From NCBI GenBank assembly GCA_965113315.1, contig OZ220363.1: DNA of 64,000 nucleotides; one strand, written 5' to 3'. Within the stretch, counting starts at the first letter, position 1, and each line of letters opens with the position of its first letter. This document shows, in pieces, positions 34,777 to 61,767 of this stretch. This stretch comes from Podarcis vaucheri (lineage: Eukaryota). The notes beneath the pieces were generated by a model, which did no database searches, had not been told where the DNA came from, and was given only the letters and a program-made list of their open reading frames with translations. The position numbers and the translations under genes were made by a program.

Positions 34777-35823
34777 CTAATGGAAAGGGAAAAACATGGG
34801 ATGTCAAAGCACACAATCACATTAAAAAGTGAAGTAAAACTCACTGATTCTGTCTGGGTTAATCAAAGCTTTAAAACATAAGAAAAGTCCAACATCCTGC
34901 CCTCACTTTGGCCAACAAGATGCCTATGGGAAACCTGCAAGTATGCATGTAGTATTTAATCTTGTGATATTTGAAGAAAAACTATGTTTTCAGTTAGGAT
35001 GCCATTTTGATTTATAGCTTCCAGACTGAACCATTTTAAAGGAAATGTTATCTGCATTTGATCATGGTTGGTCTGTGCTTGTCTGCTTCTTTCAAGACAA
35101 AGGAGGAAAACAGCAGCTACAAAAGGTCAGAGACTATCATTAATTAGTAAACGTTTATGTCCACACTTAGATCCATGCATCAACTTACAAACTAGCAGGA
35201 AATACTTCTGAAAAGTACCTTCTGTGTGGTAGAGAAGATAAAAACAACAACAATGAAGTAACGTGACTTTGATAGGACTGGAATGCAGATTGCAGCCAAG
35301 GTAGTAATTCTCAGTCCACAGTCAGTGGAGAGCTGTCCGCTCATGACTCAAAATGGGTTAACAGTATAGGATCATCTACAGTTACAGGCAGGTGGGTGCT
35401 TTGCTGCGTGGCAAAGAAGCCCACAAAAGTTACAAGCCTGCAATTTTTACTATCGTGCTGAGAGCTGGAAGGAGGAGGACAAGGACTTCCATCTCTCCTC
35501 TAACCTACTGCATTTCTATGCTGGGCTCAGAAGACAGGGCTTCCTTGCTTTGGCAGCCTACTTGGTTTCTATGCTGGTTGCATAGGACGAACGGAGAGCT
35601 CCATCCCTCCTGTGCCTGCCTGCTCTCACAGTGGCCACCTAGATGCCTATGGGATGCCCACATGCAGGACTGAGCACCCTTTAGGAAAATACTTGTATAG
35701 TGCAATTTCATGTCAAAGGGGAAAAAACACATTAAAAATACATAGTTGACAACCTCTCTCTCCCTCTCATCTATCTATCCATCCACACACCCACTATAAA
35801 AACAAGAAAAAAATTAAACTTAC

Positions 35824-35837: not shown

Positions 35838-36111
35838 CTATTACAGTTGCAAGGTTAAAAGATATTCAGAAGCATAAAGAAGTTCCTTCATTGCTTACTT
35901 ATTTAAATATTTACCAGCCACACTTTTGTATAAATGCACTATTGTGTGCCTTGACATGTGCTTTTCAATGGACATCTCTTGAAAGAAGGAGCTGCTTTCT
36001 CCTTTGTATTATTTAAAGATGTCAAATCTTGGATCTTGGAATTTCCCAGCAACAAGACTAAAAGAAAGTTCTGGCACTAACCAGTGGAAATTTACAAAAG
36101 CCATTCCTTAC

Positions 36112-36190
36112 CTCCTTCGACTGTTCACAGCAATGCAAACACCAAGTATCAATGCCAGTGCCAAGAGAGAAGCAACTACAATAAGCCAAT
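36112..36190 (-). CDS. CD44: CD44 transmembrane exon ([27 protein letters not shown])
   Basis: cccacag acceptor, AG|gtaagg donor, 79 bp; close to human [27 protein letters not shown]. Confidence 0.97.
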
Positions 36191-37097
36191 CTGTGGGTGG
36201 AAGTTCGAGGGAGGGGAAAAAACATGGAAACTTTTACTGGCTAGTCATCTGGATAGAGAGTTGACACAGTAGTTGACATAGTATCATTAATAACCCCACT
36301 TTATTTCCTTAAAGGACCCATGCTTATTGTTTTCTTTCAATGTATGAAGCAACAGAGTGAGGTTTCCTCTCAGGTCTGGCTCACAAATATTCTTTCCTCC
36401 CCTGCATGCCCATATAAATGGCAAAAATAACTGTATGGAGACTCTTTTGTGAGAAGTGGGAAGCATACAGAAACCTGATCATAACAGCTGGTACACAGCA
36501 CTGCTGTGACTAAGAAAATGGCTGCTGCTTGTTTCCAGGTTCTTCCTTCGTTATGCTAAGATTTCTCCACAAGGCTGTGTATCCACATACAAGGCTGCAT
36601 GAAGGAAATACTTGCAAGGAACTAGCATGGTGCTGCAATATAATTTTTAAAGGTGGGTTCAGCCAGGTGCCTGCCCCCGCCCCTGGACTCCCCATCTCTG
36701 ACCCAGATAGGATGAGCAAGCAAACAACGATGGTGCTGAAAAGAAACAGTAGTAGCTGCTGCCTCCTGCTTCCTCACAGGCTCTGTCTGGCAGTGGCAAC
36801 TAGCAACAATGACACTGAGGGAGACCAGTGAGAGCGACTTGCCCCCGGGCTCCCCAGGAACTGATAACTAAGTTCCTGAGACGTTCCCTCCTGTTTCCTG
36901 CTACACTGACCTTGCAAATACATGACAAAAATGAAGCCACTTTATAATGAATCTGGTGGCCTATGTAACCAAGTGTTTTCCTTGTCTACCTGGCAGAAGA
37001 TCCTGAAATGTAAGGTGACGGTCATGCCTAGACTGAACCTTTAACTTAATTTCTCAGTGATTTAACCTAAGAAGTTCTACATGCAAAGCATCTAGAG

Positions 37098-37305: not shown

Positions 37306-37405
37306 ACCTAGAGGCTCACCACTTCCAGTGGTGGCAGTGAGAGGAGCAATCACAAACCAACAGGACTTTATAATAAACATAAATGGTAAAAGTAAAGACA
37401 CCAAC

Positions 37406-37504
37406 CTGGTATGATAGCCATTCGTGGCTCGCTTTTTGGCGATTCCCCTGTCTGGTCAATGTGTGTCCCTCTTCCGGACCCCTTCGGGTCATTTGGGTTA
37501 TCAC
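37406..37504 (-). CDS. CD44: CD44 membrane-proximal constant exon (xDNPNDPKGSGRGTHIDQTGESPKSEPRMAIIP)
   Basis: ttttatctag acceptor, CAG|gttggt donor, 99 bp, phase 1/1; PRMAIIP resembles human RTPQIP. Confidence 0.88.
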
Positions 37505-38417: not shown

Positions 38418-38603
38418 TGGCAGTAGGCGATGATGGATGTCTGTCAGAACCACTGTCAATTTCAGGAAAAACTCCAGGTAATACATAATCTTGAGTGCCA
38501 TTTACAAGAGGCTCTTCTTCAGTGCTCCATTCAGGACGCAATTCATGTAACTGTGGATCTTGTGTTGATTCTTCAGTTTTGGTTCCATCCTTTGAGACTA
38601 CTG
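38418..38603 (-). CDS. CD44: CD44 stem repeat exon R11 (AVVSKDGTKTEESTQDPQLHELRPEWSTEEEPLVNGTQDYVLPGVFPEIDSGSDRHPSSPTA)
   Basis: acaacag acceptor, A|gtaaga donor, 186 bp, open, phase 1/1. Confidence 0.85.
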
Positions 38604-40064
38604 CTGTTGTAATGATGGTTGAATTAACTATTAACTATCAATTAACCTTGAAATTTGCAGAATTAAAACCGGGTGTTTTTTTTTTTTTACAAAATTCCTA
38701 CTATACTGAAAGTTTAAAAAGAACAAAATAGGGAAGTTTGCAATGTTTCTGATCTGCTTTTGAAACCTTCCATTAGTAATGGACAGTCACTCAAGTGAAC
38801 AACAGCCAGAAGCAGCTCAGATCAACGTAACATTGGATCCAAGGAGCACTTGGCAAAAGATGCCACATTAGAGTGTGCATACACATGGAAATATTGTCTA
38901 ATAATAAAATTCATGCATGGCTCCTGCTAACAAGCCCATTAACCCACACCATGCTTGGGAAGTAAGGTGTCGTCATTTCCTTCCCTTTTTCAAAACTTAA
39001 ACAAACCCACTGGCTCAAATTCAGTCCGATTTTTATCTCTACAGAGATAAATATTCAAGAAATGTAAAGCACACCAGCAGTTTGGAAAGCCCAAGTATAT
39101 GCCAGGAACAACAAAGTGAAATGAATAATCAATATATCAGTTCTTACTACAGATATTAAGAGATGCTCTAATTGTCTACCTAAAAAGAAACACTAGCCAC
39201 TGAAACTAGGAAGGAAACGAGTCTCTAAAGTACACCAAAAACTTCAACACACTGCCATGCAAAACCTTACATCTTGGCATTAATACTGACATAAAGACAG
39301 TATTTAAAGACATCACTAGGCTCTCAAGTAGGAGATGTAACAGCAGACAGCATAATAGATACATTTTGTGAAGGATCATTAGCTTCACATGATAGCAAAA
39401 TGACATAATTGAAACAATAAATGCAAATATTTGCAGAACGGAATAGAGAAATCATGACCTAAATTGTTTTAGAAAATTATTCCCCTGTACATATCCTACT
39501 CTCTCGCCCCCGCCCCCGCAAAAAAAACAACAAAAAACATATGTTTGGGAAACAGTCAATTTGATCACAACTCAAAATGCAATACTCCTTTCAACAAATT
39601 TACGTTGTGTAAACCTGCAGTGCCTGGCAAACAGACAAGTACTTCTCACAATCTTGGTGGCTATCAAAATGGTCATGGCTATCACAATCACATGTGCTCC
39701 CTTAGCCACAATTAAAGAATATTAAGCAAGGAATTTTAACAGGGAAATTTCAAAACTGAAGTTCAAAGATATGGAAATGTCATTAGGCTGCAACTGCTTA
39801 CAAATGATTTTATGACATTATTTTTTGAGGTGATCTTCACATGGTACAGTCCCCAAGTAGCAACTTCAACACATTCGTTTTACCAATAAGGTCTTGGCCA
39901 AGGTTACAATTTAGTTTCTGTTCCTCGATGTTATATAAGTTCAGGTTACATGCAATTTAATTTTCGGTGTCTGTTTTAAAATAGACATGAAAATTAACAA
40001 CATGAGATTATCTCACCTAAGATAGACAGGGTTAAAAGAATCCCACCACCATTCTACTGAATAC

Positions 40065-40211
40065 CTGTATGATCAGTATTATTTTTTTGACTTATTCCTC
40101 TTCGAGGAACAATTCCAGGAATTAAGACATCTGCTGTTGATTTTGTCGTGTATTTGTCTTCATGACCCCATTGCCTCACTGGTTCTGGGGTTGAATCTTC
40201 TTTGGCCACAT
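40065..40211 (-). CDS. CD44: CD44 stem repeat exon R10 (DVAKEDSTPEPVRQWGHEDKYTTKSTADVLIPGIVPRRGISQKNNTDHT)
   Basis: ccatag acceptor, CAG|gtattc donor, 147 bp, open; not in the ORF track. Confidence 0.8.
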
Positions 40212-41532
40212 CTATGGCAATGGTAAATGAATTGAGATTATAAAAATAGCAAAACTATTAGCTGCTTTTCACTCTGATCCACTGACTTCTTACTCTACCA
40301 GCAGAATATTTCTATCCAAACAACATGCTGGGATGCCAGATTTGCTACAATTCAGAAATTCCAAAAGACTTTGACAGTGATCTGGCTTCCCCCTTGGTTT
40401 TATTTTCTGACCCAACATCTGACATCACCAGCTGACACTGACAGTTGATTAGGCATGCAGAAAATTTCATCAACTTGACAATGACATTTGTGTTATATAC
40501 TTTTGATGGAAGAGAAAACTATTCATGAGCTACAGCCAAGTACTTGTCAGTTGTGGATGAGAGCCCACGTTCTTCAACCTTCTGCTCTCTACTCACCACT
40601 CCCTTTCTCATTTCAACTCTTCTATAGGTTTTAACTTGGGCTAATTTTATTATAAATCATGTCATAATAAAATGATCATCACAGCAAACATCATTATTTG
40701 ACTCTGGGTGATTGGCATATGCAAATAATAATAATAATGAATGAGATATAAAGAATTAAAATGTAAGACTTAGTTTCAGAACCATATTTGTATATCTTGT
40801 TTATGTTCTACAAGCTCTACACATGATAAGAAATTTAAACCAAAGGACATTATGCCCTACAGACTAGCTTGAGAACAAAACAAAACATCAGCATAGAAAT
40901 ATCTGGTCAGGTACTATCAAGTTCTTGTGTCGTGGAATGAATGCTTTTGTCTATATTGCCAGGCCTGTTTTTTCTGGAGCCAGCTTTATAAACTTGACGG
41001 GAGGAACATCTCCTTTAAATGGGGTTTGCATAAAATCAACTCTTAGAACAGGAGTTGTTCCTTATTATTATTATTATTAAGGAATAGCAAGCTTGCCTCT
41101 AGTGAGAGAACTTTTAATTCTAATTTTCAGAAGGCTATGCCTCAGTACAATTTATGCCCTAATCCCTATTTTGAACAAATCACTTGTCCTTGTCATGTAT
41201 CATTGCCTAAAAATATCCCCATAGGGCACTTTCAAATCTCAGAGGCTAGAGCTAACGTTCAAAAGTTAAAATCAGAGGATTTCCTAGAGCATGAGACATT
41301 GATCCCAAAGAATCAGTCCCTCTCAAACTGCCCGAAAACAGCAACCTTATGTTAAAAGGAACAAATAATATTCTTAGGTTAGAATTCCAACCTTAAAATC
41401 TAGACATTAATCAACGTTTCCATTTGGTGGAAAGGCGGGGTACAGATTTAAAGAACGACAAATGCTTTGTTTCAAAAACAGTGCTTCATTTCATACATTG
41501 TGATGAAATGAATAGATTATTCAGCGCAATAC

Positions 41533-41685
41533 CTGTTTGTTTGCTTTCACTATCTGAATCAACTCCCATCGGTATACCATCTCTAGAAGTATTTGTGGGA
41601 TATATTTCTTCAGCATCCCAGCCTGACTGATGAATGGGAGGTAATGGTTGTTGAGTTGAGTCTTCATGATCGTTGTGTATGACAG
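41533..41685 (-). CDS. CD44: CD44 stem repeat exon R9 (AVIHNDHEDSTQQPLPPIHQSGWDAEEIYPTNTSRDGIPMGVDSDSESKQT)
   Basis: aaacag acceptor, CAG|gtattg donor, 153 bp, open. Confidence 0.8.
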
Positions 41686-41945
41686 CTGTTTGGTGAATCA
41701 ATGATGAACTTAGGTTTGGACGTGTTAAAATACAAAATGATGGCTTTTGCAAGCCACTCCCCTCCCAATAACTCACTGCGCAATGTCCTCAACTTTACTC
41801 ATATTTACATGCAATTACATTTCTTGTGCACCTTACATGTTCAACTATATTTACTGACTGAAAATAAGAATCCAGTTGTGAGCAATGTGATTTCCCACAC
41901 CATCACCAATCACCACATAATTAAGAATGGATCTGCCACAACTAC

Positions 41946-42125
41946 CTGTATGATAGAAATTATCTATGTTATTGTTTCCAGCTGGAGGAATAACTTCTAT
42001 GGGTACTTCATCCTTCGTGCTGTTTGTAGAATAATCATCTTCTCTACCCGATTCATGATGTATATCATGTACCGTTGGATCACGAGTAGCAACTTCATGT
42101 TTGATATCATCACTGGAACCCACAG
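41946..42125 (-). CDS. CD44: CD44 stem repeat exon R8 (AVGSSDDIKHEVATRDPTVHDIHHESGREDDYSTNSTKDEVPIEVIPPAGNNNIDNFYHT)
   Basis: tcatag acceptor, CAG|gtagtt donor, 180 bp, open. Confidence 0.78.
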
Positions 42126-42552
42126 CTATGATAATGATGGTTGGGTTGGGTTAATGTTAAGTGTTCTGTAACATTTGCAGAACTACATCCCACATGATTT
42201 GCTTAGCATCGCGTTTAATTTTTTAAAATTAGTATTGCTAATGGATATCCATTACCACATTTTAGTGGATCTCAATGCAAATTTAGTTTCCTTACAAACC
42301 AGGACACAAAAGGAATATAATTCATTTGGAATATATCAACAGAATGAAAAAACAAAAACAAAACAAAAATGCACACTTCCTCTTTATATAGTTACATGAA
42401 ATGTTTTCTTTTTATTCTAACTTTCTGATAGAGGAATACTACTAAGTAGCAAGTTATCTCTAGATATTTGCAGTGTATTTTATTGTTACTTAAAAGCTTT
42501 ACTGTGTGCATGAATGAAAAATGGATGTTCAAGGCTTATACCATAACTATAG

Positions 42553-42905
42553 GTAAAGGTAAAGGGACCCCTGACTATTAGGTCCAGTCGTGACCGACTC
42601 GGGGGTTGCAGCGCTCATCTCGCTTTATCGGCCGAGGGAGCCGGCGTACAGCTTCCGGGTCATGTGGCCAGCATGACTAAGCCACTTCTGGCGAACCAGA
42701 GCAGCGCACGGAAACACCATTTACCTTCCCGCCAGAGCGATACCAATTTATCTACTTGCACTTTGATGTGCTTTCGAACTGCTAGGTTGGCAGGAGCAGG
42801 GACTGAGCAACGGGAGCTCACCCCATCACGGGGATTCAAACTACCAACCTTCTGATCGGCAAGCCCTAGGCTCTGTGGTTTAACCCACAGCACCACCCGC
42901 GTCCC
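42553..42905 (-). mobile_element. Sauria-type SINE, full length
   Basis: gtaaaggtaaagggacccctg tail end; TSD accataactatag (42540-42552) and accttaactatag (42906-42918). Confidence 0.88.
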
Positions 42906-43059
42906 ACCTTAACTATAGACCACTGCTATTCCAATGATGCTGGAATCAAGTTTAAATATTATGATTGCATGGCCAGTTCTCATATCAATAACAGACTATT
43001 GTGCCCTATCATGACACGAGCATCTTCCTTGTTTTGTTTAATGTCAATGAATTTCTATA

Positions 43060-43249
43060 CAGTGGTGCTTCGGGTTACAGACTCCGCTAACCCGGAAGTA
43101 GTACCTCGGGTTAAGAACTTTGCCCCAGGATGAGAACAGAAATTGCGCACAAACAGTGCAGCAGGCTCCATGTACCTCAAGTTAAGAAAGGTTTCAGGTT
43201 AAGAACAGACCTCCGGAACGAATTAAGTTCGGAACCTGAGGCACCACTG
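43060..43249. mobile_element. Tc1/mariner(Tigger)-like MITE, same family
   Basis: ta|cagtggtgcttc...gaggcaccactg|ta. Confidence 0.78.
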
Positions 43250-43364
43250 TAATTGATTTCCCTTAAGATTAAAATTGCAACCTGTTATCTAGCTCAATAC
43301 AGCAGCCTAATTCATCTAGAACGTAACAAAGAGAATATCTGAATTTTCTTCTTCTTGCTTGTAC

Positions 43365-43529
43365 CTATATGTGAAGTTTCATTTCCATGCACGTATTCAA
43401 CTGAAGAAATAATTCCAGGTACAAAATAATCTGTTGACGTGTTTGAAGGATGCCTGTGTTCATTGTTCTGGCCAGGATGTGCTTCTTGAGTAGACTCTTC
43501 ATGGTCACTACCACCATCAGAGACCACAG
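43365..43529 (-). CDS. CD44: CD44 stem repeat exon R7 (AVVSDGGSDHEESTQEAHPGQNNEHRHPSNTSTDYFVPGIISSVEYVHGNETSHI)
   Basis: gtgacag acceptor, TAG|gtacaa donor, 165 bp, open. Confidence 0.78.
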   Translation of the reverse strand: MWSLMVVVTMKSLLKKHILARTMNTGILQTRQQIILYLELFLQLNTCMEMKLHI

Positions 43530-43639
43530 CTGTCACAATATAGTTAGATCATTCATTCATTCATTTATTACAATGCTTATGTAATCTATTACAAAATTGT
43601 TTACTGAGAGGCACATTACCTGGCCTTCTACTGCACATA

Positions 43640-43877
43640 GATTCAAGTTACAAGAAAGGAGATTCCAGCTAAACATTAGGAAGAACCTTCTGACAATAGG
43701 AGTAGCCTAACAGTGGAACGGACTCCCTTAGTAGGTGAGGGACTCTCCTTCACTGGAGGTTTTAAAGCAGAGATTAGATGGTCAACTGTTGTGGAAACTT
43801 TTGTTGAGATTCCTGCATTGCAGGGGCTTGGACCAGATGGCTTTTGGGGGTCCCCTCCAACTCTATAATTCTATGGT
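43640..43877 (+). mobile_element. CR1 LINE 3' end fragment
   Basis: agattccagctaaacattaggaagaac...ttcctgcattgcagggg...tccaactctataattctatg, a typical CR1 3' terminus. Confidence 0.75.
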
Positions 43878-44500
43878 TACTTGGGAGGCTTCTGACTCTT
43901 TCTAAATAATGTATATGTTAGCCCATCAGCATCCCTAAAGGGCATGTTGATGGCAGAATTTCCTTCAAAAGATTTCAATGAAACAGATTGGTTTAACAAC
44001 AACAAAAATTGTATCTCTACAAGACTATTCATGTACAGTTTTGTTTTTGTAACTTGGAGGCCTAATGCCAAGTAGCCCTTCAGCCCTAGATTTATTTGTA
44101 TTTTACCTGTCCTTACTACTCCACCACTAAATTACTCCATTCATCTGACTGATGCTAAGTCAGTGGTCACTGTCATCCCTGAAAGTCGCAGTTATGGCAA
44201 TTTATTTCCGTACTTTCTGCATTTATACACCCACCTTCTAACAGTGACTCATAAAAAACACACACCTGGGTTTGAAGGCTAAGTATGGAGAGTCGTCTCC
44301 TGTAATTACTGACTCTGCTTTTAAGTGGGTTATGAATACCATTATTTTGTTGCAAATGAATGGAACTTTATTATCAACTGGCAGAGAGAATGAGAGTAGT
44401 TGGGATAGCTCTTCAAATGGAGTACGGTGACAATGCAGTACATTTGAAAAATAATACAAAGAACTGCAAATTTATTAAAGTTCTATTTCCTGGGAGGTAC

Positions 44501-44674
44501 CTGTATGATGCGTCTCCTTTTCATGCTTTCCTTCACTTGAAAGAGTAACTATAGGTGGGATATTATCCATAGTTGTGTTTGTGGTATCTTCATCTTCACT
44601 TTCCCACCCAGGATGCATTGCATGTGGTTTTTGTGTGGTGTCTTCCTGCTTGCCATTATCACTGGAGGCAACAG
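44501..44674 (-). CDS. CD44: CD44 stem repeat exon R6 (AVASSDNGKQEDTTQKPHAMHPGWESEDEDTTNTTMDNIPPIVTLSSEGKHEKETHHT)
   Basis: acaacag acceptor, CAG|gtacct donor, 174 bp, open. Confidence 0.8.
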
Positions 44675-44888
44675 CTGTTGTAATGATGGTTTGAATATTT
44701 TTCAAATGTTACATAGGTATCGTTCTTTTCATCAGTTCTTACTAAGTGCTATGTTTTGTTGAATTGAATCAATATCGTATCAGGTTTTTAAGTATAATTA
44801 CGTTTAGTCTGATGGCATTTACCTACTATGATTTACAGTTCAAGTACCTTTCATCCAACACCAGAAGAATTAAAAGCCATTAGAATTC

Positions 44889-45018
44889 CTGTACTTGGAA
44901 GACACCCAAGGAGATGTTTCCATTTCAAGACTGCTTCAACTTGGAAGAGTTATTTCAGGCAGGAGATAATATCAAGCAGCAAACAAATTTTGCATACTTT
45001 TTCATCACACCATGCTTC
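44889..45018 (-). pseudogene. Decayed CD44 stem repeat exon (donor GT>GA, frame disrupted)
   Basis: - strand CCTGCCTGAAATAACTCTTCCAAGTTGAA...GAAACATCTC resembles the 3' half of the repeat; ends ACAG|gaattc instead of ACAG|gtattc. Confidence 0.5.
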
Positions 45019-45154
45019 CTGTGTTTAGTGAAAGTCCATTTATTTAAATGGAGTCAGGATTACATCTTTACATAGTTTGAGATAGCTTCTAATTTATCTA
45101 GAGAGATTACTGAAAAAAGAAGTAAAATGTTTTTACTATTTTTCCAGTCAATAC

Positions 45155-45334
45155 CTGTGTCTGAACGTTCATTTTCATGCTCACTTTCAGCTGCATGAAG
45201 AATTCCAGGCAGCAAATGATTTCCAGATGTGTTTGTGAGATGTTTTTCTTCATTATCCTGTCCAGAGTGCTCACTGTGCAACATTGTATCCCGACCGGAA
45301 TCTTCATAGTCAGTGCTATCACTGGAGTCTACTG
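45155..45334 (-). CDS. CD44: CD44 stem repeat exon R5 (AVDSSDSTDYEDSGRDTMLHSEHSGQDNEEKHLTNTSGNHLLPGILHAAESEHENERSDT)
   Basis: gtaacag acceptor, CAG|gtattg donor, 180 bp, open. Confidence 0.8.
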
Positions 45335-45527
45335 CTGTTACAAAGATGGCTGGGTCAGTTTTGAATTCTCTGCTTTCACATGCGCTTCACTAAGTGCAAT
45401 TCTACTTAACCCCAGCATGGAAAGTGGAAATCAGTAACCACAATAGCCCTTTTAGATGAGACAGAACTATAGCTCTATCCAAAACGTATTCTATGGCTAT
45501 AAAATCTACACAGAAAACAGGGGCAGT

Positions 45528-45841
45528 ATACCTGAATGAGCGTCTCCACCCCCATCGTTCTGCCCGGACACTGAGGTCCAGCGCCGAGGGCCTTCTGGCG
45601 GTTCCCTCACTGCGAGTAGCAAAGTTACAGGGAACCAGGCAGAAGGCCTTCTCAGTAGTGGCACGCGCCCTGTGGAATGCCCTCCCACCAGATGTCAAAG
45701 AATAAACAACTATCTGACGTTTAGAAGGCATCAGAAGGCAGCGCTCTTTAGGGACGTTTTTAATGACTGATGTTTTAATGTATTTTTAATCTTTTGTTGG
45801 AAGCTGCCCAGAGTGGCTGGGGAAACACAACCAGATGGGGG

Positions 45842-45897
<56 letters not shown>
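45528..45897 (+). mobile_element. LINE (L2-like) 3' end with (TTA)n tail
   Basis: YLNERLHPHRSARTLRSSAEGLLAVP...QKAFSVVARALWNALP resembles an L2-type ORF2 C-terminus; (ATT)n run at about 45843-45897. Confidence 0.7.
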
Positions 45898-45898
<1 letters not shown>

Positions 45899-45944
45899 TC
45901 TAATTTAGCTAAAAGATTTAATGATAATGAATCACTGTCTGTAC

Positions 45945-46102
45945 CTGTATGTGGCATTTCCTTTTTACTCACTTTTTATTCTGAGAAATGATTCTAAGTG
46001 GCTAATTAAATTTAGATGCATTTGCAAGGTATTTAATGTCACTGTCCCAGCCAAGATCATATACAACCATCTCTGCTTCATGAATCTTTTGAAGCCTCTT
46101 GT
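45945..46102 (-). pseudogene. Decayed CD44 stem repeat exon (...GWDSDIKYLANASKFN*PLRII...)
   Basis: Keeps the GW-D-S-D motif and the CATACAG|gtac donor, but has an in-frame TAG and a frameshift. 5' boundary approximate. Confidence 0.6.
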
Positions 46103-46279
46103 CTGGGAAAGCAAATCTTTCTGCCATAGGACTCATTTTGCCGGACTCTGGAGTATTTATAAATACTTGTCCAGATCAAGTCAACATAGGCCTTTGGTCA
46201 TCAACCTCAATGGAAGACTAAAGTAACCCAGTCTAAAAAAAGAAAAGGCAAGAATAGGTGGTGTTTTTTTAAAAAAAAC

Positions 46280-46393
46280 CTTTTCATGTTTTTTCTCTCT
46301 AGCTGCAATAAATTTGCCTTCACTGCCCAAGAGGATATAAACTAGCCTACATGTGTGAATCATGAGAGGAATCTTTGTAGTTCATTCCAACAG
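46280..46393 (-). pseudogene. Decayed/truncated CD44 stem repeat exon (AVGMNYKDSSHDSHM*)
   Basis: Family-type acceptor gattcagacattattatagcag|CTGTT followed by an early TAG. Confidence 0.5.
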
Positions 46394-47071
46394 CTGCTAT
46401 AATAATGTCTGAATCTGTTTTAAAGACAACAAATGGTAGCGAATGGTAGCCTGATAAAGAATAGACCCATTAAAATCAGTGGACTGGGATAACATGAATC
46501 CATTCATTTCAGTGGATCAGCTCTTGATTTAGTTAGACAATACCCTATGTTAGCAGTTTCCTCCTCATAATTATTTGATGCCCATCTTATCTAGCTTTAC
46601 GGGCACTATCAGAATTTTAGGTGAAGTCAATTAAAATATTAGGTTAAGGCTTAAGCAGTATTAATTATTAGGTTAAGACTGAACTCCATATGCATTGTCA
46701 AAGTAATAAATTCCATCTCGGGAAACAATAACTTCCAATCTAACATGCCACATTTCTCAAATTATTTTCCCAAAGAAGTATACATGGCTTCATCTTTAAG
46801 AGGACTTCAACCCAATAAGACTTCAAAAACATTTCTGTTTTGCTTAGAAATTTACTGATGTGCTATGCAAGCTTGCTACTATTTTCTTGTGGATTTGGGG
46901 TTTTCTAAATTGTTTTTAAATTTATTGTTTGATCTTGAGTTTACATATTTGTCAGTCATCTTGTGGAAGTTTTGTCGTTGTTGTTTTGAAAAGTGACTAT
47001 ACATTTATTAAATGAATTTAAAAAGTGTAGAAAAGTTTAACAATGCCGAATTTTCTTTTTCTTCCTAGTAC

Positions 47072-47255
47072 CCGAATGAGATATTTCCAAATCCTCTTCA
47101 TGCTTGTTTACACTTGAAATGAGACCAGGCATAATTCCATTTTTAGATGTTTTTGTAGGATATCAATTTTCATTGCTCCCACCAAGATGGATCTCATTAA
47201 TCTATATACCACGATTATCAGTCTTCACAGTTAATCTTACCCGTGGAGACCACAA
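47072..47255 (-). pseudogene. Decayed full-length CD44 stem repeat exon (VVVSTGKINCED*...EIHLGGSNEN*YPTKTSKNGIMPGLISSVNKHEEDLEISHS)
   Basis: AG and GT sites intact and clear homology, but two TGA stops and a length of 184 bp (frameshifting). Confidence 0.72.
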
Positions 47256-47450
47256 CTGCTACAATGATGACTGAATCAATACCACATTTTCACTATCAGG
47301 CCCATGTTATGTAGATGAAATAATTTTCTTAGGATGTATCAGTAGTTAAGGCTGCAATCCTGATTCATGCTGACTTCATAGGAGTCAGGATTACACCCTT
47401 CGTAGGAAATAATAATGATTGGGGCTGAATAGAACTTTTCTGAGATATAC

Positions 47451-47618
47451 CTGTATAAATGGATTCATTTTTTTGCTCATTTTCACTTGGATGAATAATT
47501 TCAGGTAGTGTCTCTTTGCTGGATGAGTTTGTGGGGTATCTTTCTTCATTGGACCATTCAGGATATATGCCATGAGTTGGTGGGCCTTGAGTGGATTCTT
47601 CAACTTTCATCCCATTAT
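47451..47618 (-). CDS. CD44: CD44 stem repeat exon R4 (DNGMKVEESTQGPPTHGIYPEWSNEERYPTNSSSKETLPEIIHPSENEQKNESIYT)
   Basis: aaagcag acceptor, CAG|gtatat donor, 168 bp, open. Confidence 0.8.
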
Positions 47619-49000
47619 CTGCTTTTGTGGTGAAGTATTTGTTAAATTTAATATATGCAGAACCACTGTCTATTGTACATGCATTTTGCAGTTCAATATG
47701 AATCCAACTACACTGGTGGCACGCAAGAAAAAAGGGTGCCTTTTAGGGGTCTGTTTATCTGTCACTAAGTCAAGATTCTCTATTACACTTTTAGTATAAG
47801 CACTTTTCAATAAAAAAAATAACCAGTTCATATTTCAGTTAATTCATTTTAGTTAAATCCTTTGAAACAATATCTTATCTAGCCATTATTATGTACATGT
47901 GAAGCAAGCATTTTGTATTCCACAGCTATAAAATGATTTTGGTTTTAGTTAAATGATATGAAGACAACATATTTTGTTCATTTCTTATTTGCAGACAGCT
48001 TGGTTTCTAAAAAAAAGAAAAGAAATAAGCTTGCAAAGGAGGTATTTTGACTTCCTCATAGACACATGCTGTTTATGGCACAATTTGTAAAAACAAATTT
48101 GTTCTTTCAATGTTGTGACGGCAAAGCAGGCAACAGAAATACAAATTAGTAAATACTGTAGATAATTTTGGTTATCTACAGTAAATGTGGAGTATTTTCT
48201 ACTTGAAGAAACGCTAAAACAACAGTAATGGGCTGCATCTACAGAACAGAGGCCCAAGCAAAATAATTGTGTGTAAAGCACTCTGACACTAATATTCTTG
48301 GTGTCAGAGATTGAATTATATTGGGGTGGTGATGTCAAGATGAAATAAAACTAATATGATATGAAGCCCTACTCAGATGATGAAATGTGACTTATCTGTT
48401 TGAATGGAATAGTGGCTCTTCTCAAAGCTACCTCTTTTTAAAACTTAGGTGCCACTGATGCAAAAGAACATGGGTCCACCATTCTTTAACACTGACTGAG
48501 GTAGCAGGACAGAGAAATGTGCGTAGGATCCTGCAGAAGGGATGGCGCCATTTGGAGGTTGGGCCTCAATGGACTGGCGGTAATGCCATCCATTATTGGG
48601 AATGCTAACAATCCATTATTAATGGAAAGTTTTGTCAGACTGCCATGATTATCTTAGTGCCCTAATATTGGAATACTAGGAATTCACTTTAAAGGGTAGT
48701 AAGAAGGCCTAAATATATGTGAGATGCAGGTCTGTGAATGTAGCTGCCGTGTAAGGGGCAGGTGAACTGGATCATAACCGTGACATAGGAGGGGCTGCTG
48801 CTTTCCTCCTGTGCAATTACCACAATAAAAATTGCTTCCGTTTTTGAAGCCATGTTTCACCCCAAATGGAGAAGCATCAGACCACAGTTCTAATAAAGGC
48901 TGGACTTCTCACTGAGACATAAAAGCCTTCCTATTCGCTGACATAAAAGAGAAATAGAACTGAACATAGGAAGATTACATTAACATCCTGCAAGCAGTAC

Positions 49001-49174
49001 CTGTCTGAGAAGATTCATTGTCATGAAGCTTCTCACTTTGAGGAATAAGTGTTTCTAGGACACCAAGGATCGTTCTGTTTGTGGCAGAACCACTTCTCCG
49101 CCCAGCTTTGCCCACTGTGGATAACTGATCTTGATGTGATTCTTCACGTTCAGCACTTTCATTGAAGACTAAAA
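49001..49174 (-). CDS. CD44: CD44 stem repeat exon R3 (VLVFNESAEREESHQDQLSTVGKAGRRSGSATNRTILGVLETLIPQSEKLHDNESSQT)
   Basis: caatag acceptor, CAG|gtactg donor, 174 bp, open. Confidence 0.75.
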
Positions 49175-49459
49175 CTATTGTAGCAATGATAAATAATGCA
49201 GGAATCAGTAACTCAGTATTTTGGATTTCCGTGTGTTTAGTAGATAGTGAGAGACTCAGAAAGCTCTGTGCGTGAACTCCAATGGAAACAGGCTTCCCCA
49301 ATTGTTTCGCCATAGGATGGAAACCTTATTTATGCATGTAGAATAGCTACCTCAACAGAAGTTCATAGGTAAGCCCATTCTGCCTGTCAGAATTCTCACC
49401 TCAAGAAGGAGTCACTGTACTGAGGTGGTTATTTGAATCAGTATAGTTCAAACCTTCCA

Positions 49460-49651
49460 TGGGGAAGAAGCTTGACTCAGTGGCAGAGAACCTGCTATGA
49501 ATGCAGAAGGGTTCCATCTCTAGCATCTCCACATAGGACTCGGAAAGACTCTGTCCGAAACCTGGCACAGCTGCTGCTAATCGTTGTAGACTGTCCATCT
49601 TGAGCTAGATGGACCAGTGGCGTGACTCACTATAAGGCAGCTTCCTGTGTT
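49460..49651 (+). mobile_element. tRNA-derived squamate SINE (Squam3-like); head-only copy at about 3641-3702
   Basis: ggggaag..gactcagtggcagag head and gagctagatggaccagtgg...ataaggcagcttcct tail. Confidence 0.6.
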
Positions 49652-50412
49652 TGAGATGGCATGCTAATCACTAGTTAGTGCAAGAAGAGGTATAATTTTA
49701 TCATTTTGTATAATTTTTCTTTCTGTGTGGAAATGGATAGAATGACTAATGCACAAACCAATTCGGCCAAAATGCTTGGATGAAAATTCAGTCTTCTTAC
49801 AGAATCAGCTACTTCCACTGAGTTCAGTAGGCTTACATCAGCTTAAACCCAGATTCTTCAATTTGCATACTGTAGCAATAAGTCTGGCAACCAATACAGC
49901 TCAAGCTGCTGCATTGCCACAACAGGGATAAAACACAGATAACTTCAGAATAACCAAACAGCAAAGTGGTCTTGATTTATACCTCTGTGTTCTCACACAC
50001 GGCACATCCTTAATATTCGGACAAACCACTGGCCCATCAAGCCCAGTACAGTCTACTTTTAGATATTTATATAGGTTTACTAGCAAATGGTATAAACATA
50101 AATTTTATCGGTATTACATATCTGGGGTACTTTTGACACTGATAAAAGATTGTACCTATCTATTTAAAATGTAACTAAAAATAATGGGAGAAAAATGACT
50201 GCGAAGAGCAAAACTCTCAACAATTTGGAACTCACACCTCTAATATATGGAAGAATAACTAAAGGAAACTCACAACGCCCACCAACCCCTTGACTAAAAG
50301 TTCTAATTTTAAGTATGGTTAAACACCATTTCTCCAGAAACCTGGATCAGGAAATGAAAGCAAACAATCCAAATGAACATCTAATTCTACAGTTCACTAT
50401 TGGTTCTGATAC

Positions 50413-50601
50413 CTGTATGGTGGGAAGATTCTTCCTCCAGAGTTCTTTCTCTTTCACTTGATGGAACAAGCACAGGATGCAATACGTCTGAAGCTGTGGT
50501 TGTAGGTAATGTGTCTTCAGTTTCTAATCCAGAGAGAGCACCATCTAGTGGAGTCTGAGTTGAGTCTTCCTGCTTGAAGAAATCATCACTGGAGGACCCA
50601 G
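50413..50601 (-). CDS. CD44: CD44 stem repeat exon R2 (AGSSSDDFFKQEDSTQTPLDGALSGLETEDTLPTTTASDVLHPVLVPSSERERTLEEESSHHT)
   Basis: ataacag acceptor, CAG|gtatca donor, 189 bp, open. Confidence 0.8.
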
Positions 50602-52289
50602 CTGTTATGATGATGTTTTGAATCAGTTGCAGTGTTATGCTTGCTGAACAACCATCCAGATTGTTCACTTTATCTTGTTAAACTAGACATGGCTTGCTTT
50701 TTCAATTATGTGCATAAGCAAGAGGAGGAGGAAAGTAGATAGTTTTTTTGGGAAAGTATTGTTGAATTCACAGCCACCCAGTGTCATCACCTCGATTATC
50801 AGAAGTTGCTGATTTTCCAGACAGTGCCCCAGAGACCAGTAGGAATAGCGGAAAGGCGTGTAACAGTATTATAGGCAGAAAAGATGTGACAACAGCTTGC
50901 ACCTTTAACTGATCTATCAAACGTCTTTGATAGATGCCAAGGCTTTGTACAACTAAAATCACAGCACCATCTTAAGTCCATAAACTTTCTCTTTCTTGTC
51001 TTCTTTTTCTTCTTCCTTTTTCATTGAAATTGTACTTTTTGGAATATGTTTAGACATTTGTTCCAGGCTCTAAGGCCAAATGCTGCAGATAGATAATGTT
51101 GGTTCACACATTCAACTTGAAAAAAATATTTTGGCCGGCATTCTGAGCCAGATGTAGTTCAACCATTTCAGCATAGCCTTATACAGTTCTAAAGGTGCTG
51201 CTGTTTAAATCCAAGGAAACTGTCAGAAGCATCTTGAGGTACCACCACCACACCACCAGATTTTTCCTTCAGAGTCAAACCTTTTCCCAGCATTCAGCAG
51301 GAAGCATAATGTGTTGAACATTATGATGACTGCCTGAGATGAGCCCAAGAGAACATGCTTTAGATTTTGAGAAATAACACCAAGCCCACAGAAAGCCCTT
51401 TGGAATAAGAAAGCAAGGTCGACCCCATCTGCAAGAGAAAATGCTAATACATTTCCATAATAAACCAAACCAAAATTGCAATGCAAGTTGTGTATGTGTT
51501 TGTATAAATTCCATTTGTTCATCTTTCATTCCCTAATATTGCAATCGTCCTCTAATGTTGGCAAATCTATGCTCTTGGGTTCAAAAGATCTCTGTTTTCA
51601 TGTGTTTGAATAGCAGTTTATATAGTTCTTTCTTTAAAACAAAGTGAAGCATCACAAAATGAGCTCATGTTAGCTCACAACTTTCTAAACAAGGAACTGA
51701 TTTGAGCCAATTTTGTGAAGTCTACAAGCATTGGCTACTTGAAAAACACAGCGGCAACTTGATTTGGTATGGGCCAATCTCATCATGTTTCTATGCTGAC
51801 TTTTACTGGCTGCGTGTCTGATCTATGTGTACTTTAGCACTGCCAAGCTCCCTTTGTGTAGCACTGAATTGAGGCCAACGTGGTTACATATGACCGCACT
51901 TTAAAAAATGCTGCTTTAAGATATGGTTAGACAGGGATGACATGTTGGTTTGGAACTTCTGCAAATTTCAGGGAACTTTGGAGTCTAAAATAAATTCAGA
52001 TTTGGGATTTGTGACTCACTCTTGCTTAGCCAAAGCCAAATAACACGTGAGCCTTGGGTTTCATGGTTTTGTTAAGATTTAACAGAACACATCTGGGGGG
52101 AAATGCCTTCAAATGTGTGACTCTGCTTTCTTTTTTTAAAGTAATCACAGCATATTATCTGCAGATGTAGTAGCAGATATAGCACTGCACCATGATTCTA
52201 ATTATTAACTAACTTCTAGACTTTGATACTGTGAGAGTTGATGCTGACATGAAAGAGGTATCGTCAAGATCATGCTTTAGTAGTCATAC

Positions 52290-52463
52290 CAGTAGCTGTT
52301 GAATAATGTTCATCATCACCTAGAGGAACAATTCGGGGTAGCACATCCTCCCTTGTGCCATTTGTTGAATATCTGACTTCACTGTCTTTTTCAGAGTGTA
52401 CACCATGCAGAAATGAATCATGGGCCGAGTCATCATGCTTGACATCTTTGGTGGAGACCACAG
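52290..52463 (-). CDS. CD44: CD44 stem repeat exon R1 (AVVSTKDVKHDDSAHDSFLHGVHSEKDSEVRYSTNGTREDVLPRIVPLGDDEHYSTAT)
   Basis: acaacag acceptor, CTG|gtatga donor, 174 bp, open. Confidence 0.8.
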
Positions 52464-54683
52464 CTGTTGTGACAATAGTTGAATTTATATTTATTTGACT
52501 ATATTCCACACTACCACCAACCAATTAACATTGGTATTATTTCTTGGGTATAACACATGGGTATAACATAAGTTCAGGTATTTTTAATGCACAGCTCACA
52601 TATCCATGCCATTTCGTCTTTAGCATCAAGTGGAAACTTACATGGGTGAGAGAACCCTCTGAAATTCACCATCGCAGGCACAACAATTTGAAATCAAATG
52701 CAATACTTTACAGTGGACAGTTCACACATGTCCATTGAATGCCATCAAATACTGAATAAATAAACAACCATGAATCAGGAGTGTGTCCTCTTTAGATTGT
52801 AAATATTCACTCTGGCTGAAAATTGCTACAAAAGTAGTAGATCTGCAAGCAAAACCCATGATATGGGACAGAAAATTTTCCCAAATGAAAATTTTTCTAG
52901 TTTCTGTTCCCTAACTGGCAATGAATGGCTGCCAATTGCTAATGTAATATCGGAAAAGTTTGGATGTTTCAAAGGTTTTGTTCTATTTACTAAAACACAA
53001 GTAAAAGAAATATGCTAGGTTAGATAACCATGTAGGTCATCAGAAAATTTTCTGATGCAAGCACTTCTGGAAAACCCACATCAATGGGCAAATGTCAGGA
53101 TCATAGCCCTCAAATGTCTTGGAAAAATAGAATTTTGGAAACTTAACATTTTACTTTTCATCAGAGTGGCAGAGTGCATTTATTTTAAGTTCAGGTGGGC
53201 AATCGCACAATAGTGCCACTAGTTTTGTACTACTGCTGAAGAAAATTGCAATCATGACCACTGATGAGTTTCAGAGATCATTACAAAAATCCAAACTCAA
53301 CCCTTCTGTTACCATCAAGTGCTATGCATCCTAACCTTTCCACTTATAACCAAAGGTTGTCATTAAAACAAAAACTGGGATTGGTTCTGTGCTTTGAACA
53401 GCAACTTGATACAGAAAAGTAAGGGTACTTCTACACTGTCGTTACTCCTGGGTGCTGCTCAGTCATGTACCAGAAAACTCAGGTTATACAATTAAAGCAG
53501 GTTTGGCACCCTTGTGCAACAAATCTGCTTCTCCTAAAAATCAGCCTTAAATGCAATGGAAAGTGTGTAAAGTGTGGGATAACAATGGCTTTATTAAAGT
53601 AGTAAGCAAGCAAGCAAGTAAGGCTGTTGCTAAAGGCACAAAAATATATGCCTCCAACTACTGTATGAAATTATGTTGGAAAACAGTAAAATAAAGTTTT
53701 GATCCACAGAATTTTTTCCTTTGAAATGCACTCTTTGACTTACGATTTGCTTTGCTTCACTATGGAAGAACTATAGCAAAATGCATGATTCAGACAATGC
53801 AATGAGACCCACTACACTTCTGATAGAAACAAATGACTACAAGCCGCTTGACTGATTTCACTAAATTGTATTTTCCACAATTAGAGAAAGAATAATCCAG
53901 GAAGATATGCACAACATATGTTAGTTTAACATATAACTTGATGCTTGTTGCTAAACCCAAAGAATAGCTTTTACCACCACCACAATATAACCACCATCTC
54001 ACCATAGCAAAATAAATTTGACCTCATAGACCACCTGTGCACAAATAACATGAATGATAAAAGTCAGAGCCTAGAGATTAAGTGTACTGATAGGAATAGT
54101 ACTTTCCCAAATACAACTGAAGGCACCAGCACACTTTGCAATGTCCCCATCATAGAGATAATCCAATGCAAAAGAAACCAAACTAGTTTAAGGATGTTTA
54201 CCAAGTAAAGCGTTGTTTCATAATATGCATTCCTAGGACAAATGCCTAACAGATACCAGTGCGAAGAGGTAAGGCAAGTCAGAGCTAAATGAAGCTCAAG
54301 CATAAAACACAAAATGAGACTTTAATTTTATAAGTATGCACCCAAGTTTGCATTTCCAGACTAAGCCAATAGGACTGTACCATTATCATATGCAAACACG
54401 AAGTCCTGCTCCCAGTTTAGGATATGCATAGAAATAATGGCAGAGTAAAATAATTCATGGTACTCAATTAAACCTTCTTTGCTTTGTGTTGTCTATTATT
54501 AAGCAGTAATCTTGCATTATATCCAGAATTGCATTATAAATTAATTTTGGATTCGATGTTGTGGTATTTCTGAATTATGTATGGCGCAAACTATTCCTTA
54601 CATCCAAATCCCATGGTTTACTGAGACACATCTAATGACTTTCATTATAGTGCAGTGCATTCATTACAGGAATTAATGCTTAC

Positions 54684-54854
54684 TGGTTTTTGATGGCCGA
54701 GGTTCGTTATCACCACTGCTGTTCCATTCAAGAACGGTTTCAGGATTTAAGTGCCCAGACCCTTCTCCATAATGATCATCATCATCGCCACCATCATCAT
54801 CATCGCCACCATCATCATCATCAAAAACATCACGATGTTCTTCAGAACTCTTAT
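54684..54854 (-). CDS. CD44: CD44 acidic variable exon (DKSSEEHRDVFDDDDGGDDDDGGDDDDHYGEGSGHLNPETVLEWNSSGDNEPRPSKT)
   Basis: cactag acceptor, A|gtaagc donor, 171 bp, open, phase 1/1; not in the ORF track. Confidence 0.78.
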
Positions 54855-55769
54855 CTAGTGATTTGATTATGTAAACCTACGATAAGCTTTTAATATCATT
54901 ATCCATTTCCCAATCACCAAAGTAAGTATCTTTCTTATTTGTGGTAGTGTTTTCAGAGCTCCTCATTAGAGATGAATAATGAGTAAGAGATTAATAATGT
55001 GTAATAGATTTATTGGGTGGAAATAAACCAAACAGTGGTGGTGGTGCAACAATGTACAATGTGCATTAAATCAATAAGAGTGTCTGTGATCCAGTGCATG
55101 GCAAGAAGATGGTTGAGTTGGTTACAGTTGCCTTGTATCACTGTATCACAAGGCATTGTGAGTGATATAATAAAGAGAAGAGAGAGCATTTACAAGGCAC
55201 TCAATACATCAGGATATGCTCCTGGGAGGCACTGCAAGATCCTTTGGATTCCACTAGAGAAAAGTTGGAGCTCTGAATATGGGTGATTTGACAAGAATCT
55301 CAGTGGAAATGCTATATTCTTACTGTATAATTTGCTACCATAAGAAAAGAGACAGTTACACAGAAGTTAAGAGACAGCACAAGAGAATTTTCAGTTTATG
55401 CATCCCACTGCCACCACAAATAATGGAGCTGGCATTAAGAACAACCAATGGATAAGAAGAAATAAAGTTATTGACAAAGCAACCCAATATTAGGATGCTT
55501 TGAGGGGTTATTAAAAGAGCAGGGGATCTCAGCAATACATAGATGTAGCAATAGAGGATACATATTCAGTCCAAATGAAGATTCATGTATATTCAGTCTG
55601 AACTGTATATTCAGATCCAAAGATTTCTGACTACGTGGGGCTTTATTGAATAGAAAAATCCTTACAGAATTAGGGGCTGTTTTCTACAATCAACACACTA
55701 CTTCTGATGTTACCATTAAGTTTGTATTCTAGACAATTATAAACGATTGTTAGCAGTTAATTTTTTTAC

Positions 55770-55856
55770 CCCAAGTTCCTTCAATGGGATGATGCACCTC
55801 CTTAAAATCAATACTGGTGGACATTTTCTCATGTGAGTTGTGATGAGGGCTGACAG
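55770..55856 (-). CDS. CD44: CD44 variable exon, loosely v7-like (AVSPHHNSHEKMSTSIDFKEVHHPIEGTW)
   Basis: ctgaacag acceptor, GGG|gtaaaa donor, 87 bp, open, phase 1/1. Confidence 0.68.
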
Positions 55857-58557
55857 CTGTTCAGACAACAGAGGAATGAGTTATGATATTTTTATTTGTT
55901 AAGCCAACATTTCCCAGCTAAGCTACTATCCATCAACACCTTCCTGAATAAACAACTTGCCTGCCAACAATAAGATTAATAAGAGGAAGGGAGAAAGAGG
56001 CTTAACAGTTAGGCGTTTGGTGCTTAATTCAAGAAAGAGGGGTCTGTTCCTATAGTTCTTGAATTGACTTCTCACAGGAATTGAAAACCTTGTAGTATTT
56101 ATCAAAATCAGAAGAGTTTATTTATACACTAGAGAGAAGTTAGCTTAGGGCACAGAAGAAGAGCAGGGCATTGATAAAATAAAGCCAAATATAATATTAA
56201 CCAATAAGGAAGCAAAATAAAGTTGAGGAAAAATTAAGTGAGGGTATTGAATCCCTTTATTTAAATTGTGGTGCATCTACAAGCCATTTTTGTGAATCCC
56301 AAAGCCCTTACTCACACCCACCCACCAAAGTTTTACCGTATGTATTTTTGTGCTTACAATGGGTGGAATCCAATCAGGGCACTTACGATAACAGAAGGCT
56401 TTTAATTCAGCAGGTGCCATTTGCTAATGGACGGGGAGGGCAAAAGATTTTTCCCAATTCACTCTTCGTCCTGCAATCCATCCCCACTATAGCTTATACT
56501 GTGTTTTGGAAGGTACCCCAAGTTTCTGGAGCTGTTTTTCAGGGGCACTGTGGAAGAGATCAGCAGAAATGTTTCCTCCTCTCAACCACTGGATCAAAAG
56601 CCCTTCCATGAGCTCAGGGAAGGGTAAGAACGAGGATACCTTTCTGTATGTATGTATGTATGCAAAGGGTTGCCTGTTATTGACTATATTATTTTTTTCT
56701 GATTTTAGCGTTTCCTCTGTTTAAACCTTGCATAAGAGAAAAATAGGACAAAGTGCCAGGCCAAGAAGCACTGCTCACAAAACTGTCCTCAAAAGATCAC
56801 TAAGAGAACTGGATCCCATAAAGTCATTTGCCCATTTTCTGTCTCTCTTGTTTCCCATTGCTAATTGGCCACAGTAAGCTGCTATTTTTTAATTCTTGTT
56901 TGCAACTTTGATTTGGTTTAAAGAGAAATGTCAAGCTGATGTGGTCAAGAATCCTTAAACAGGGAGAAGTAAATACAAGGCTTTGTGTGTTTGTTATAGG
57001 CTACAGAAAGATCAGTTATAATGACTGTTTTCTGGTCCATGGTAACGCCAGAACTGTCTAATAACGCTGCACTATGGTTTGATGCTACATTCATGAGCAA
57101 GAAAGAGCTGCTATGAGGCTTGTGCCCCTTCTGCCCCTTTCTGATCACAGAGAGAATATTTATTTTCATTTTCTGAGAAACCTGGCTTGCCATTATGTAG
57201 GAACTAGGGACAGTGGTTTAAGAGAAGCTGTGGTTGTTTAAACAAGCCTGGTTCATAACTCAAGGTTTGAAGTTGGCTTGTTCAGAAACTGATCAGAGTT
57301 TGGTTTACATCAATCTCTGGTTCATATGTTATCAGTTAAGATTCTTTGAAACTGGAACTAAATGCTCCAGAAACCTTCTCCCTGCCACATGGAAGGAGAG
57401 CAGAAAACAAGTATGCCCAAGACTCACGGAAGCTTCTTTCACTTTGTGCATGGTTTGTGTGCCTAAACCATGGCTTATCATTATGTGCAAATGCAGTGAA
57501 TGTGAAAATCATCTAGGTTATACCATCTAGGTATTATACTACAGTATAATACCAGGCTAAGGTATCACAGTGTAATAAAATTGTTAAGAGTAATGAAGAA
57601 AGCCAAAACAATGCCTTTCTGGATTCAGAATATGAATGGCAATTACAGCGGTGAATGTTTTGACAAGATAATGATTTCATGTCAACGGGCTTTTGTGACA
57701 GTTCTCAGAAAAATATAGCTATGAAGTTTTAATTGGTGCCTAAAAGAGGAGAAGTGGAAAGGAGAAAGCCATGACTAAATTATAATTATTGAAAATAATG
57801 GCAAAGCAAATGGAAGAGAGTACAGTGCAAGACTATGGAACTAGTTCCTCCTCTACAGTTACATGGGGAAGATACCTGATAAAGCTAATTTACACAGCAA
57901 AGATTTTACCCTAATTCTTATTTTCACAACTAACTTTTATCCATTATTGCATATATCTAAAACAATTTCAAAATGATCCATATTATTTAGAAATATTTGA
58001 ATTGAGCACAGTGCTGCAGAAGGCTTCCCATATTGCACATTGCAAGGAAAGGTGCATGTGTGTGCTTAGTATGGGCGTACCTTTTTCACAGGCACATATG
58101 TGAAGCTGAGGCATTTAATACCTTCTTGGCCAGAGGGAATTGCTGCATTGTGCTACAACCAGGTAACAACAATGAAGCTGCTAGGTCAATCCACATGACC
58201 ACTTTCAGCATAGTAATTGCTGTGCACTTCCACTGGCAGTTCTCCTGTGGCTACATGCAGTACAGTATGCTGATTTGTGCTTCCGCACGATGGTATAAGT
58301 GGTTGGAGAAAAGAGGACCTGCGGTCAACTTGTGCACTGTTCTATGTGCCACTGGCGACCACATGACTGCAATCCTCTCATATTGCCAGTGCTCAAGCAT
58401 AACAGTCACTGTGCTGGAGGCGGCTGCAATGCTGGTTTCAGTCACAGCAGGCAAAAGAAGACTAGCAGTAACTTCTCATCGAGAAGACGAGTTTGTTGCC
58501 CGACCATTTTTAAGAGCGGGGGGTGTCAAACTGACTAGAACATTTGTAAGGCGTTAC

Positions 58558-61680: not shown

Positions 61681-61686
<6 letters not shown>

Positions 61687-61766
<80 letters not shown>
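61687..61766. repeat. Compound (CT)n(CA)n microsatellite
   Basis: Directly visible. Confidence 0.95.

Positions 61767-61767
<1 letters not shown>

Follow-up and report, generated by a model that had tools for sequence, protein, structure and literature searches.

Evidence for an ancient, pan-squamate array of variable stalk exons in the CD44 gene of the lizard Podarcis vaucheri

Most of the CD44 gene is present on the - strand of a 64-kb window of Podarcis vaucheri DNA (64,000 nucleotides of contig OZ220363.1, assembly GCA_965113315.1, with no N runs), and within it lies a tandem array of eleven homologous, variable-type stalk exons, which is the subject of this study. All coordinates are positions in this window, given from low to high. 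The CD44 RefSeq model of P. raffonei (XP_053243970.1) is collinear with the window in tblastn, from 63192 down to 34572, and its cytoplasmic tail matches with 100% identity over 69 amino acids. Along the gene, this map places the extracellular exons at 54682-63192, then the array at 38418-52463, then an exon at 37377-37499, followed by the transmembrane exon. The full-length P. raffonei model also carries a Pfam Xlink domain (E 1e-20), the exons of which fall past the end of the window. The gene is CD44 of a lacertid, and the array is its variable stalk region.

The array consists of eleven open exons of 147-189 bp on the - strand, 1893 bp or 631 codons in total, which were analysed one by one (Table 1). 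A scan for AG/GT sites in phase finds that every length is a multiple of three and every exon is phase 1-1. The last base is G or A in 11 of 11 exons, so no junction codon can become a stop, and as the exons are symmetric the reading frame is kept with any subset. At the 3' ends, ACAG/GT (the slash marks the exon boundary) is found in eight of the eleven. A first-pass annotation of this window, made from the letters alone, had already described the eleven exons, their phase, their stop-free junctions, a shared consensus and the ACAG/GT end of most of the exons; the exon scan, the RNA joints of E7-E12, the models of congeners and the translated alignment all agree with it. Its total of 1890 bp (630 amino acids) is 3 bp lower, the difference lying at tandem acceptors. 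It had likewise named the gene and the tandem exon duplication, which the collinear tblastn map and the profile search below uphold.

The same exons are found in public gene models. The RefSeq and Ensembl CD44 models of P. raffonei, P. muralis and Zootoca vivipara have the same exon order, with 81-100% amino-acid identity to the window; the P. raffonei X2 and P. muralis X4 models contain all 11 exons at 93-100% identity, and the Zootoca models are without E10. The splice sites of E1-E4 and E13 fit the RefSeq CD44 protein of a Podarcis congener. The gene content is hence not new, as the exons are already modelled. These models are automated and come without a published description of the repeat, and the genome of the window is slightly different from both Podarcis models. 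As a minor feature, NAGNAG-type tandem acceptors (aaag/cag/ and acag/cag/tag/) are seen on the - strand at 47618/47621 (E4), 45328-45334 (E7) and 38597-38603 (E13), and could yield isoforms 1-2 residues apart.

Each exon encodes one copy of an acidic, Ser/Thr-rich, cysteine-free unit of 49-63 residues, usually ending in H-T. When each exon was left out in turn and a profile of the remaining ten was run against 3393 six-frame pieces of the window, 10 of the 11 exons were recovered, with E values from 3e-8 to 2e-17. In the translated exon alignment the units have 19-32% amino-acid identity to the first unit, which indicates an old, divergent repeat and not a near-identical amplification. At the DNA level the likeness reaches some 20 nt past the acceptor into the preceding intron (TTCAACCATCATTACAACAG, directly before the exon) and ends just past the donor GTA, with ACAG/GTA as the donor common to the array exons. 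The repeat unit has no match in a PDB profile search and no Pfam family. Judged by these alignments and profiles, the array exons are products of tandem exon duplication. The A/C-rich intron end TTCAACCATCATTACAACAG stands about 20 nt upstream of E1, E2, E8, E10 and E13 (e.g. 44675-44694) and is conserved between paralogues whose protein sequences share only about 25% identity. It probably combines a branch point with a weak acceptor that is poor in pyrimidines, and a shared role in splicing control is possible.

Expression was assessed with two stranded RNA sequencing runs and the contigs of two further runs, over 40040-46039, an interval that contains E7-E12, or 6 of the 11 exons. Spliced reads include these exons. 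Five RNA joints (40211-41533, 41685-41946, 42125-43365, 43529-44501 and 44674-45155) fall exactly on the predicted boundaries, all GT..AG on the - strand, with 29-83 reads each in one read orientation. One 849-nt contig runs uninterrupted through E12-E11-E10-E9-E8 and the start of E7, and the per-base depth is alike across E7-E12. No exon-skipping joint is found among the best 15 of the 51 joints of the two runs in this interval. E7-E12 are transcribed and spliced, and the samples covered show their inclusion as a run. Eight of ten exon differences between the window and the RNA source are nonsynonymous, a sample too small for a test, which suggests that the array exons evolve fast at short range.

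Such a pattern, with well-supported neighbour joints, even depth and a gapless contig, would also be given by exons that are in practice constitutive, present as one block in every long form and fixing a long stalk without combinatorial diversity. We consider this unlikely. Its evidence comes from two runs, six of eleven exons and the best 15 of 51 joints, and against it the gene models of three lacertids include isoforms without contiguous middle blocks. The annotated lacertid isoforms omit only contiguous blocks, namely E9-E10, E3-E4, E4-E8, E3-E8, E3-E9 or E3-E10; E11 and E12 are present in every listed model, and E1, E2 and E13 are each absent from only one or two. Of the combinatorial use that had been proposed at first, one part stands, as any subset keeps the frame, and the other is so far a possibility, the best 15 of the 51 RNA joints being consecutive only and the annotated isoforms skipping contiguous blocks only. 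A variable stalk array in which block skipping is regulated would fit these models.

The distribution of the unit extends well beyond lizards. A profile of the eleven exons was searched against 1.84 billion representative proteins and gave 46 matches at E<=1e-3, of which 23 were examined by name. The 16 named matches among these all belong to sauropsids, either as CD44 or as unnamed proteins, and come from Podarcis, Salvator, Gekko, Lerista, Vipera, two turtles, Alligator, emu, ostrich, goose, falcon and ground tit; the other seven are unnamed short Logan open reading frames. Among these 23 matches none is named as mammalian or amphibian. The best 120 of 1525 matches in a search with the link domain, all from squamates or turtles, include long CD44 isoforms of dozens of these species, the longest lacertid model among them having 1173 amino acids. 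Counted with the same profile, CD44 contains 10-11 units in lacertids, 11 in Rhineura, 12 in Hemicordylus, 9-11 in iguanians, Varanus, tegu and snakes, 7-10 in geckos, 9-11 in turtles, 11 in alligator and 10 in both emu and ostrich; the overall range in geckos, tegu, snakes, turtles, alligator, ratites and other birds is 5-11.

The age of the array can be read from the orthology of its units. Within squamates, the score matrices give a collinear diagonal of reciprocal best matches between the Podarcis units and those of other species, and 9 of 11 Podarcis units have a reciprocal-best partner in the gecko Paroedura. In a unit tree with support from the Shimodaira-Hasegawa-like approximate likelihood ratio test (SH-aLRT), every Podarcis unit falls in a squamate-only orthogroup (93-100). 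The clade of U11 (98) takes in the last units of alligator and turtles and also bird units, and U1 clusters with units of turtles and alligator (80-84). The orthogroups of U2 and U6 are sisters (96), and U4, U5, U7 and a decayed unit form a squamate-only group (80), both of which point to duplications on the squamate stem. Later duplications are seen elsewhere. Turtles have three near-identical units in Chelonia and a repeated four-unit block in Malaclemys, and the alligator units show duplications of their own (unit counts, score matrices and tree). The emu and ostrich models hold a two-unit period four times with identical copies, which is either a very recent ratite tandem duplication or an assembly or annotation artefact. 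On this comparative evidence, the 11-unit set predates crown squamates, a small multi-unit array would have existed in the sauropsid ancestor, and turtles, crocodilians and ratites would have expanded the same unit independently.

A wider proposal, which we hold tentatively and would not be surprised to see revised, is that one ancestral repeat of exon size, with an N-glycan sequon at a fixed place, was multi-copy in the sauropsid ancestor, and that copies were then gained and lost independently in squamates (reaching about 15-17 units, of which 11 remain here), turtles, crocodilians and ratites. This history is apparently undescribed in the literature searched, and it goes against the published claim that variable exons are mammalian-only.

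The relation to the mammalian variable exons has to be considered here. The mammalian v1-v10 and the lizard array share the gene, the place within it, the design as symmetric cassettes and a Ser/Thr-rich, glycosylated stalk. Mammalian CD44 v exons are 90-204 bp long, in multiples of three. With a similar exon number as well (10-12), the sauropsid array might be a one-to-one counterpart of v1-v10, descended from an array of about ten exons in the amniote ancestor, the mammalian exons having diverged past recognition. We regard such a correspondence as improbable. The profile gave no match named as mammalian or amphibian among the 23 of 46 matches at E<=1e-3 that were examined, only the first and last units are orthologous between squamates and turtles, crocodilians and birds, and most squamate units stand in squamate-only clades, some of them as sister paralogues (U2 with U6; U4, U5 and U7 with the decayed unit), which indicates later duplication. 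A difference from v1-v10 is that the sauropsid exons can be recognised as copies of one repeat and have a consensus in common. In mammalian epithelial CD44, v8-v10 are commonly retained. In nearly all of the annotated lizard models the terminal exons of the array stay and the middle ones are dropped, which partly recalls this retention.

A recent amplification, within lacertids or a narrower group, that created a new combinatorial system of stalk length is highly improbable, for although the units are clearly homologous and tandem, and a 2008 paper described the CD44 variable exons as absent from the non-mammalian genomes then available (PMC2531186), the units are only 19-32% identical to the first one, they are closer to their positional orthologues in Rhineura, Varanus, Anolis, Python, Hemicordylus and geckos than to paralogues in their own genome, and arrays are found in all sauropsid orders sampled. 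For a lacertid expansion the paralogues should be closest within the genome, and this fails, each unit being closest to its positional counterpart in other squamates. As a candidate, recent lineage-specific amplification is ruled out by the reciprocal-best matches and the unit tree, unless the orthogroups are artefactual. The suggestion of a lineage-specific array must therefore be given up, in view of one-to-one orthologues across squamates (9 of 11 in geckos) and arrays in turtles, alligator and birds. Its novelty falls with it, since the array is already annotated across sauropsids and the P. raffonei and P. muralis RefSeq isoforms hold all 11 exons.

Taken as a whole, the best explanation is an ancient, pan-squamate CD44 variable stalk array that is spliced and already annotated, and we hold it with high confidence. 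Several points weigh against it. E3 was only marginal (E 0.42) in the leave-one-out search of the window pieces. The unit tree is a maximum likelihood tree of 113 units from 12 species over 59 columns, with SH-aLRT as its only support, and the deep relations between squamate and non-squamate units mostly lack resolution in it. The RNA source is a closely related or identical species, about 1% different from the window at exon positions, and a joint skipping the whole array falls outside the 6 kb covered by RNA reads. The block-skipping isoforms are automated RefSeq and Ensembl gene models. Finally, an AlphaFold2 model of the full P. raffonei CD44 (30-sequence alignment) reached a mean predicted local distance difference test score of 33 and was uninformative on the stalk; the link domain failed too, so low confidence in the stalk says nothing, and disorder is argued from composition only.

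That composition is distinctive. The 618 residues encoded by the array exons contain 22% Ser+Thr, 20% Asp+Glu and no Cys, and relative to the charge-hydropathy boundary they lie on the side of disordered proteins. An N-x-S/T sequon is present in 81% of 243 sauropsid units, mostly at a conserved T-N-x-S/T position. The array thus encodes an acidic, Ser/Thr-rich stalk with glycosylation sequons, and the stalk is probably disordered. Its glycosylation, like any functional consequence, is inferred.

Ancient tandem exon duplication built the array, with all 11 units already in place in the ancestor of living squamates and at least the first and last unit types shared by descent with turtles, crocodilians and birds. 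Since then units have been lost, as seen from the decayed copies in the window and the one unit gone in Zootoca. The long isoforms take in the exons consecutively and so lengthen a probably disordered and glycosylated stalk that separates the hyaluronan-binding domain from the membrane, and the shorter annotated isoforms drop contiguous blocks from the middle of the array. The product would be a disordered, acidic, heavily glycosylated spacer whose length is set by the number of cassettes spliced in, as for mammalian CD44v. The leukocyte protein CD45 (PTPRC) offers a parallel, as its exons A, B and C are cassettes for O-glycosylated, disordered segments, the inclusion of which alters how long the ectodomain is and how much glycan it carries. 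CD45 is a different gene, however, with only three such exons that do not form a recognisable tandem repeat.

To our knowledge, CD44 variants have been intensively studied in mammalian cancer and epithelial biology, and where the variable exons came from is seldom discussed. The long variable region of sauropsids, which is expressed, built of a recognisable repeat and traceable in its gains and losses, offers a cleaner system for the origin of CD44v and for the effects of stalk length and glycan load. If the mammalian v exons stem from the same repeat, the origin of the whole CD44v system would be explained. In the literature searched there is no description of repeat exons in non-mammalian CD44, only a statement of absence from 2008, in which the chicken, Xenopus and stickleback genomes are said to have no variable exons and v3 is called an exclusively mammalian trait (PMC2531186). 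The broader form of that statement is outdated, as read from the sauropsid gene models.

Table 1. Exons of the CD44 array, flanking CD44 exons and decayed repeat copies in the 64-kb window
Feature	Position	Strand	Evidence
E1 (U1)	52290-52463, 174 bp	-	AG/GT open frame; 98-100% identity to Podarcis CD44 models; leave-one-out E 3e-10
E2 (U2)	50413-50601, 189 bp	-	Open frame; congener models; leave-one-out E 2.9e-8
E3 (U3), most divergent unit	49001-49174, 174 bp	-	Congener models; leave-one-out E 0.42; orthogroup SH-aLRT 100
E4 (U4)	47451-47621, 171 bp; tandem acceptor 47621/47618	-	Congener models; leave-one-out E 1.6e-17
E7 (U5)	45155-45334, 180 bp	-	RNA joint 44674-45155 (60 and 57 reads); congener models; leave-one-out
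E8 (U6)	44501-44674, 174 bp	-	RNA joints both sides; congener models; leave-one-out
E9 (U7)	43365-43529, 165 bp	-	RNA joints both sides; congener models; leave-one-out
E10 (U8)	41946-42125, 180 bp	-	RNA joints both sides; congener models; not in Zootoca models
E11 (U9)	41533-41685, 153 bp	-	RNA joints both sides; congener models
E12 (U10)	40065-40211, 147 bp	-	RNA joint 40211-41533 (51 and 58 reads); congener models
E13 (U11), last unit	38418-38603, 186 bp	-	Congener models; clade SH-aLRT 98 including alligator, turtle and bird units
CD44 exon directly upstream of array	54682-54855 (approximate limits)	-	tblastn with P. raffonei CD44 residues 354-416; translation
CD44 membrane-proximal exon	37377-37499	-	tblastn with P. 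raffonei CD44
CD44 transmembrane exon	36102-36233 (approximate limits)	-	Translation; tblastn
CD44 cytoplasmic-tail exon	34572-34778	-	100% identity over 69 amino acids, P. raffonei CD44
Decayed exon, full length, stops and frameshift	47048-47289	-	nhmmer E 4.8e-21; tblastn Rhineura unit 4, 56% identity, E 1.7e-8; three-frame view
One or two decayed exons	45937-46423: 5' half 46305-46423, 3' half 45937-46056	-	nhmmer E 1.3e-7 and 1.1e-6
Weak decayed fragment	44911-44976	-	nhmmer E 0.033
Decayed exon with in-frame stops	44028-44147	-	tblastn Hemicordylus unit 8, 47% identity, E 1.8e-5; three-frame view
Decayed exon in two halves	42387-42975: 42901-42975 and 42387-42479	-	nhmmer E 8.5e-5 and 0.004

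Between the intact exons, the protein and DNA profiles find four to six decayed - strand copies of the repeat. The full-length copy at 47048-47289 is the orthologue of an intact extra unit that lies between U4 and U5 in Rhineura, Varanus, Anolis and Hemicordylus. The 3' half at 45937-46056 keeps a relic donor (...HTG/gt) at 45945. RNA depth is near zero over the decayed copies 44028-44147 and 45937-46039. A stretch of high-copy interspersed repeat contains or borders the halves 42901-42975 and 42387-42479. Read depth that is very high on both strands, with many loose ends in all runs, marks high-copy interspersed repeats at intronic 42440-43240 and 45440-45840, the first of which overlaps a decayed repeat exon, and a long (AAT/ATT)n microsatellite at 45834-45908 adjoins a decayed exon.

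Elsewhere in the window, the protein profile finds no further copies of the unit, and the DNA profile gives only faint matches to two upstream CD44 exons on the - strand, 58559-58723 and 62604-62798 (E 0.0015 and 2e-4). One of the two encodes ...STQ...WW...N-A-T, and both may be very divergent members of the repeat-unit family. The exon directly upstream of the array, at 54682-54855 (-), encodes a long acidic Asp/Gly run followed by E-G-S-G. This resembles a glycosaminoglycan attachment site along the lines of the SG sites of mammalian v3 or exon 5.

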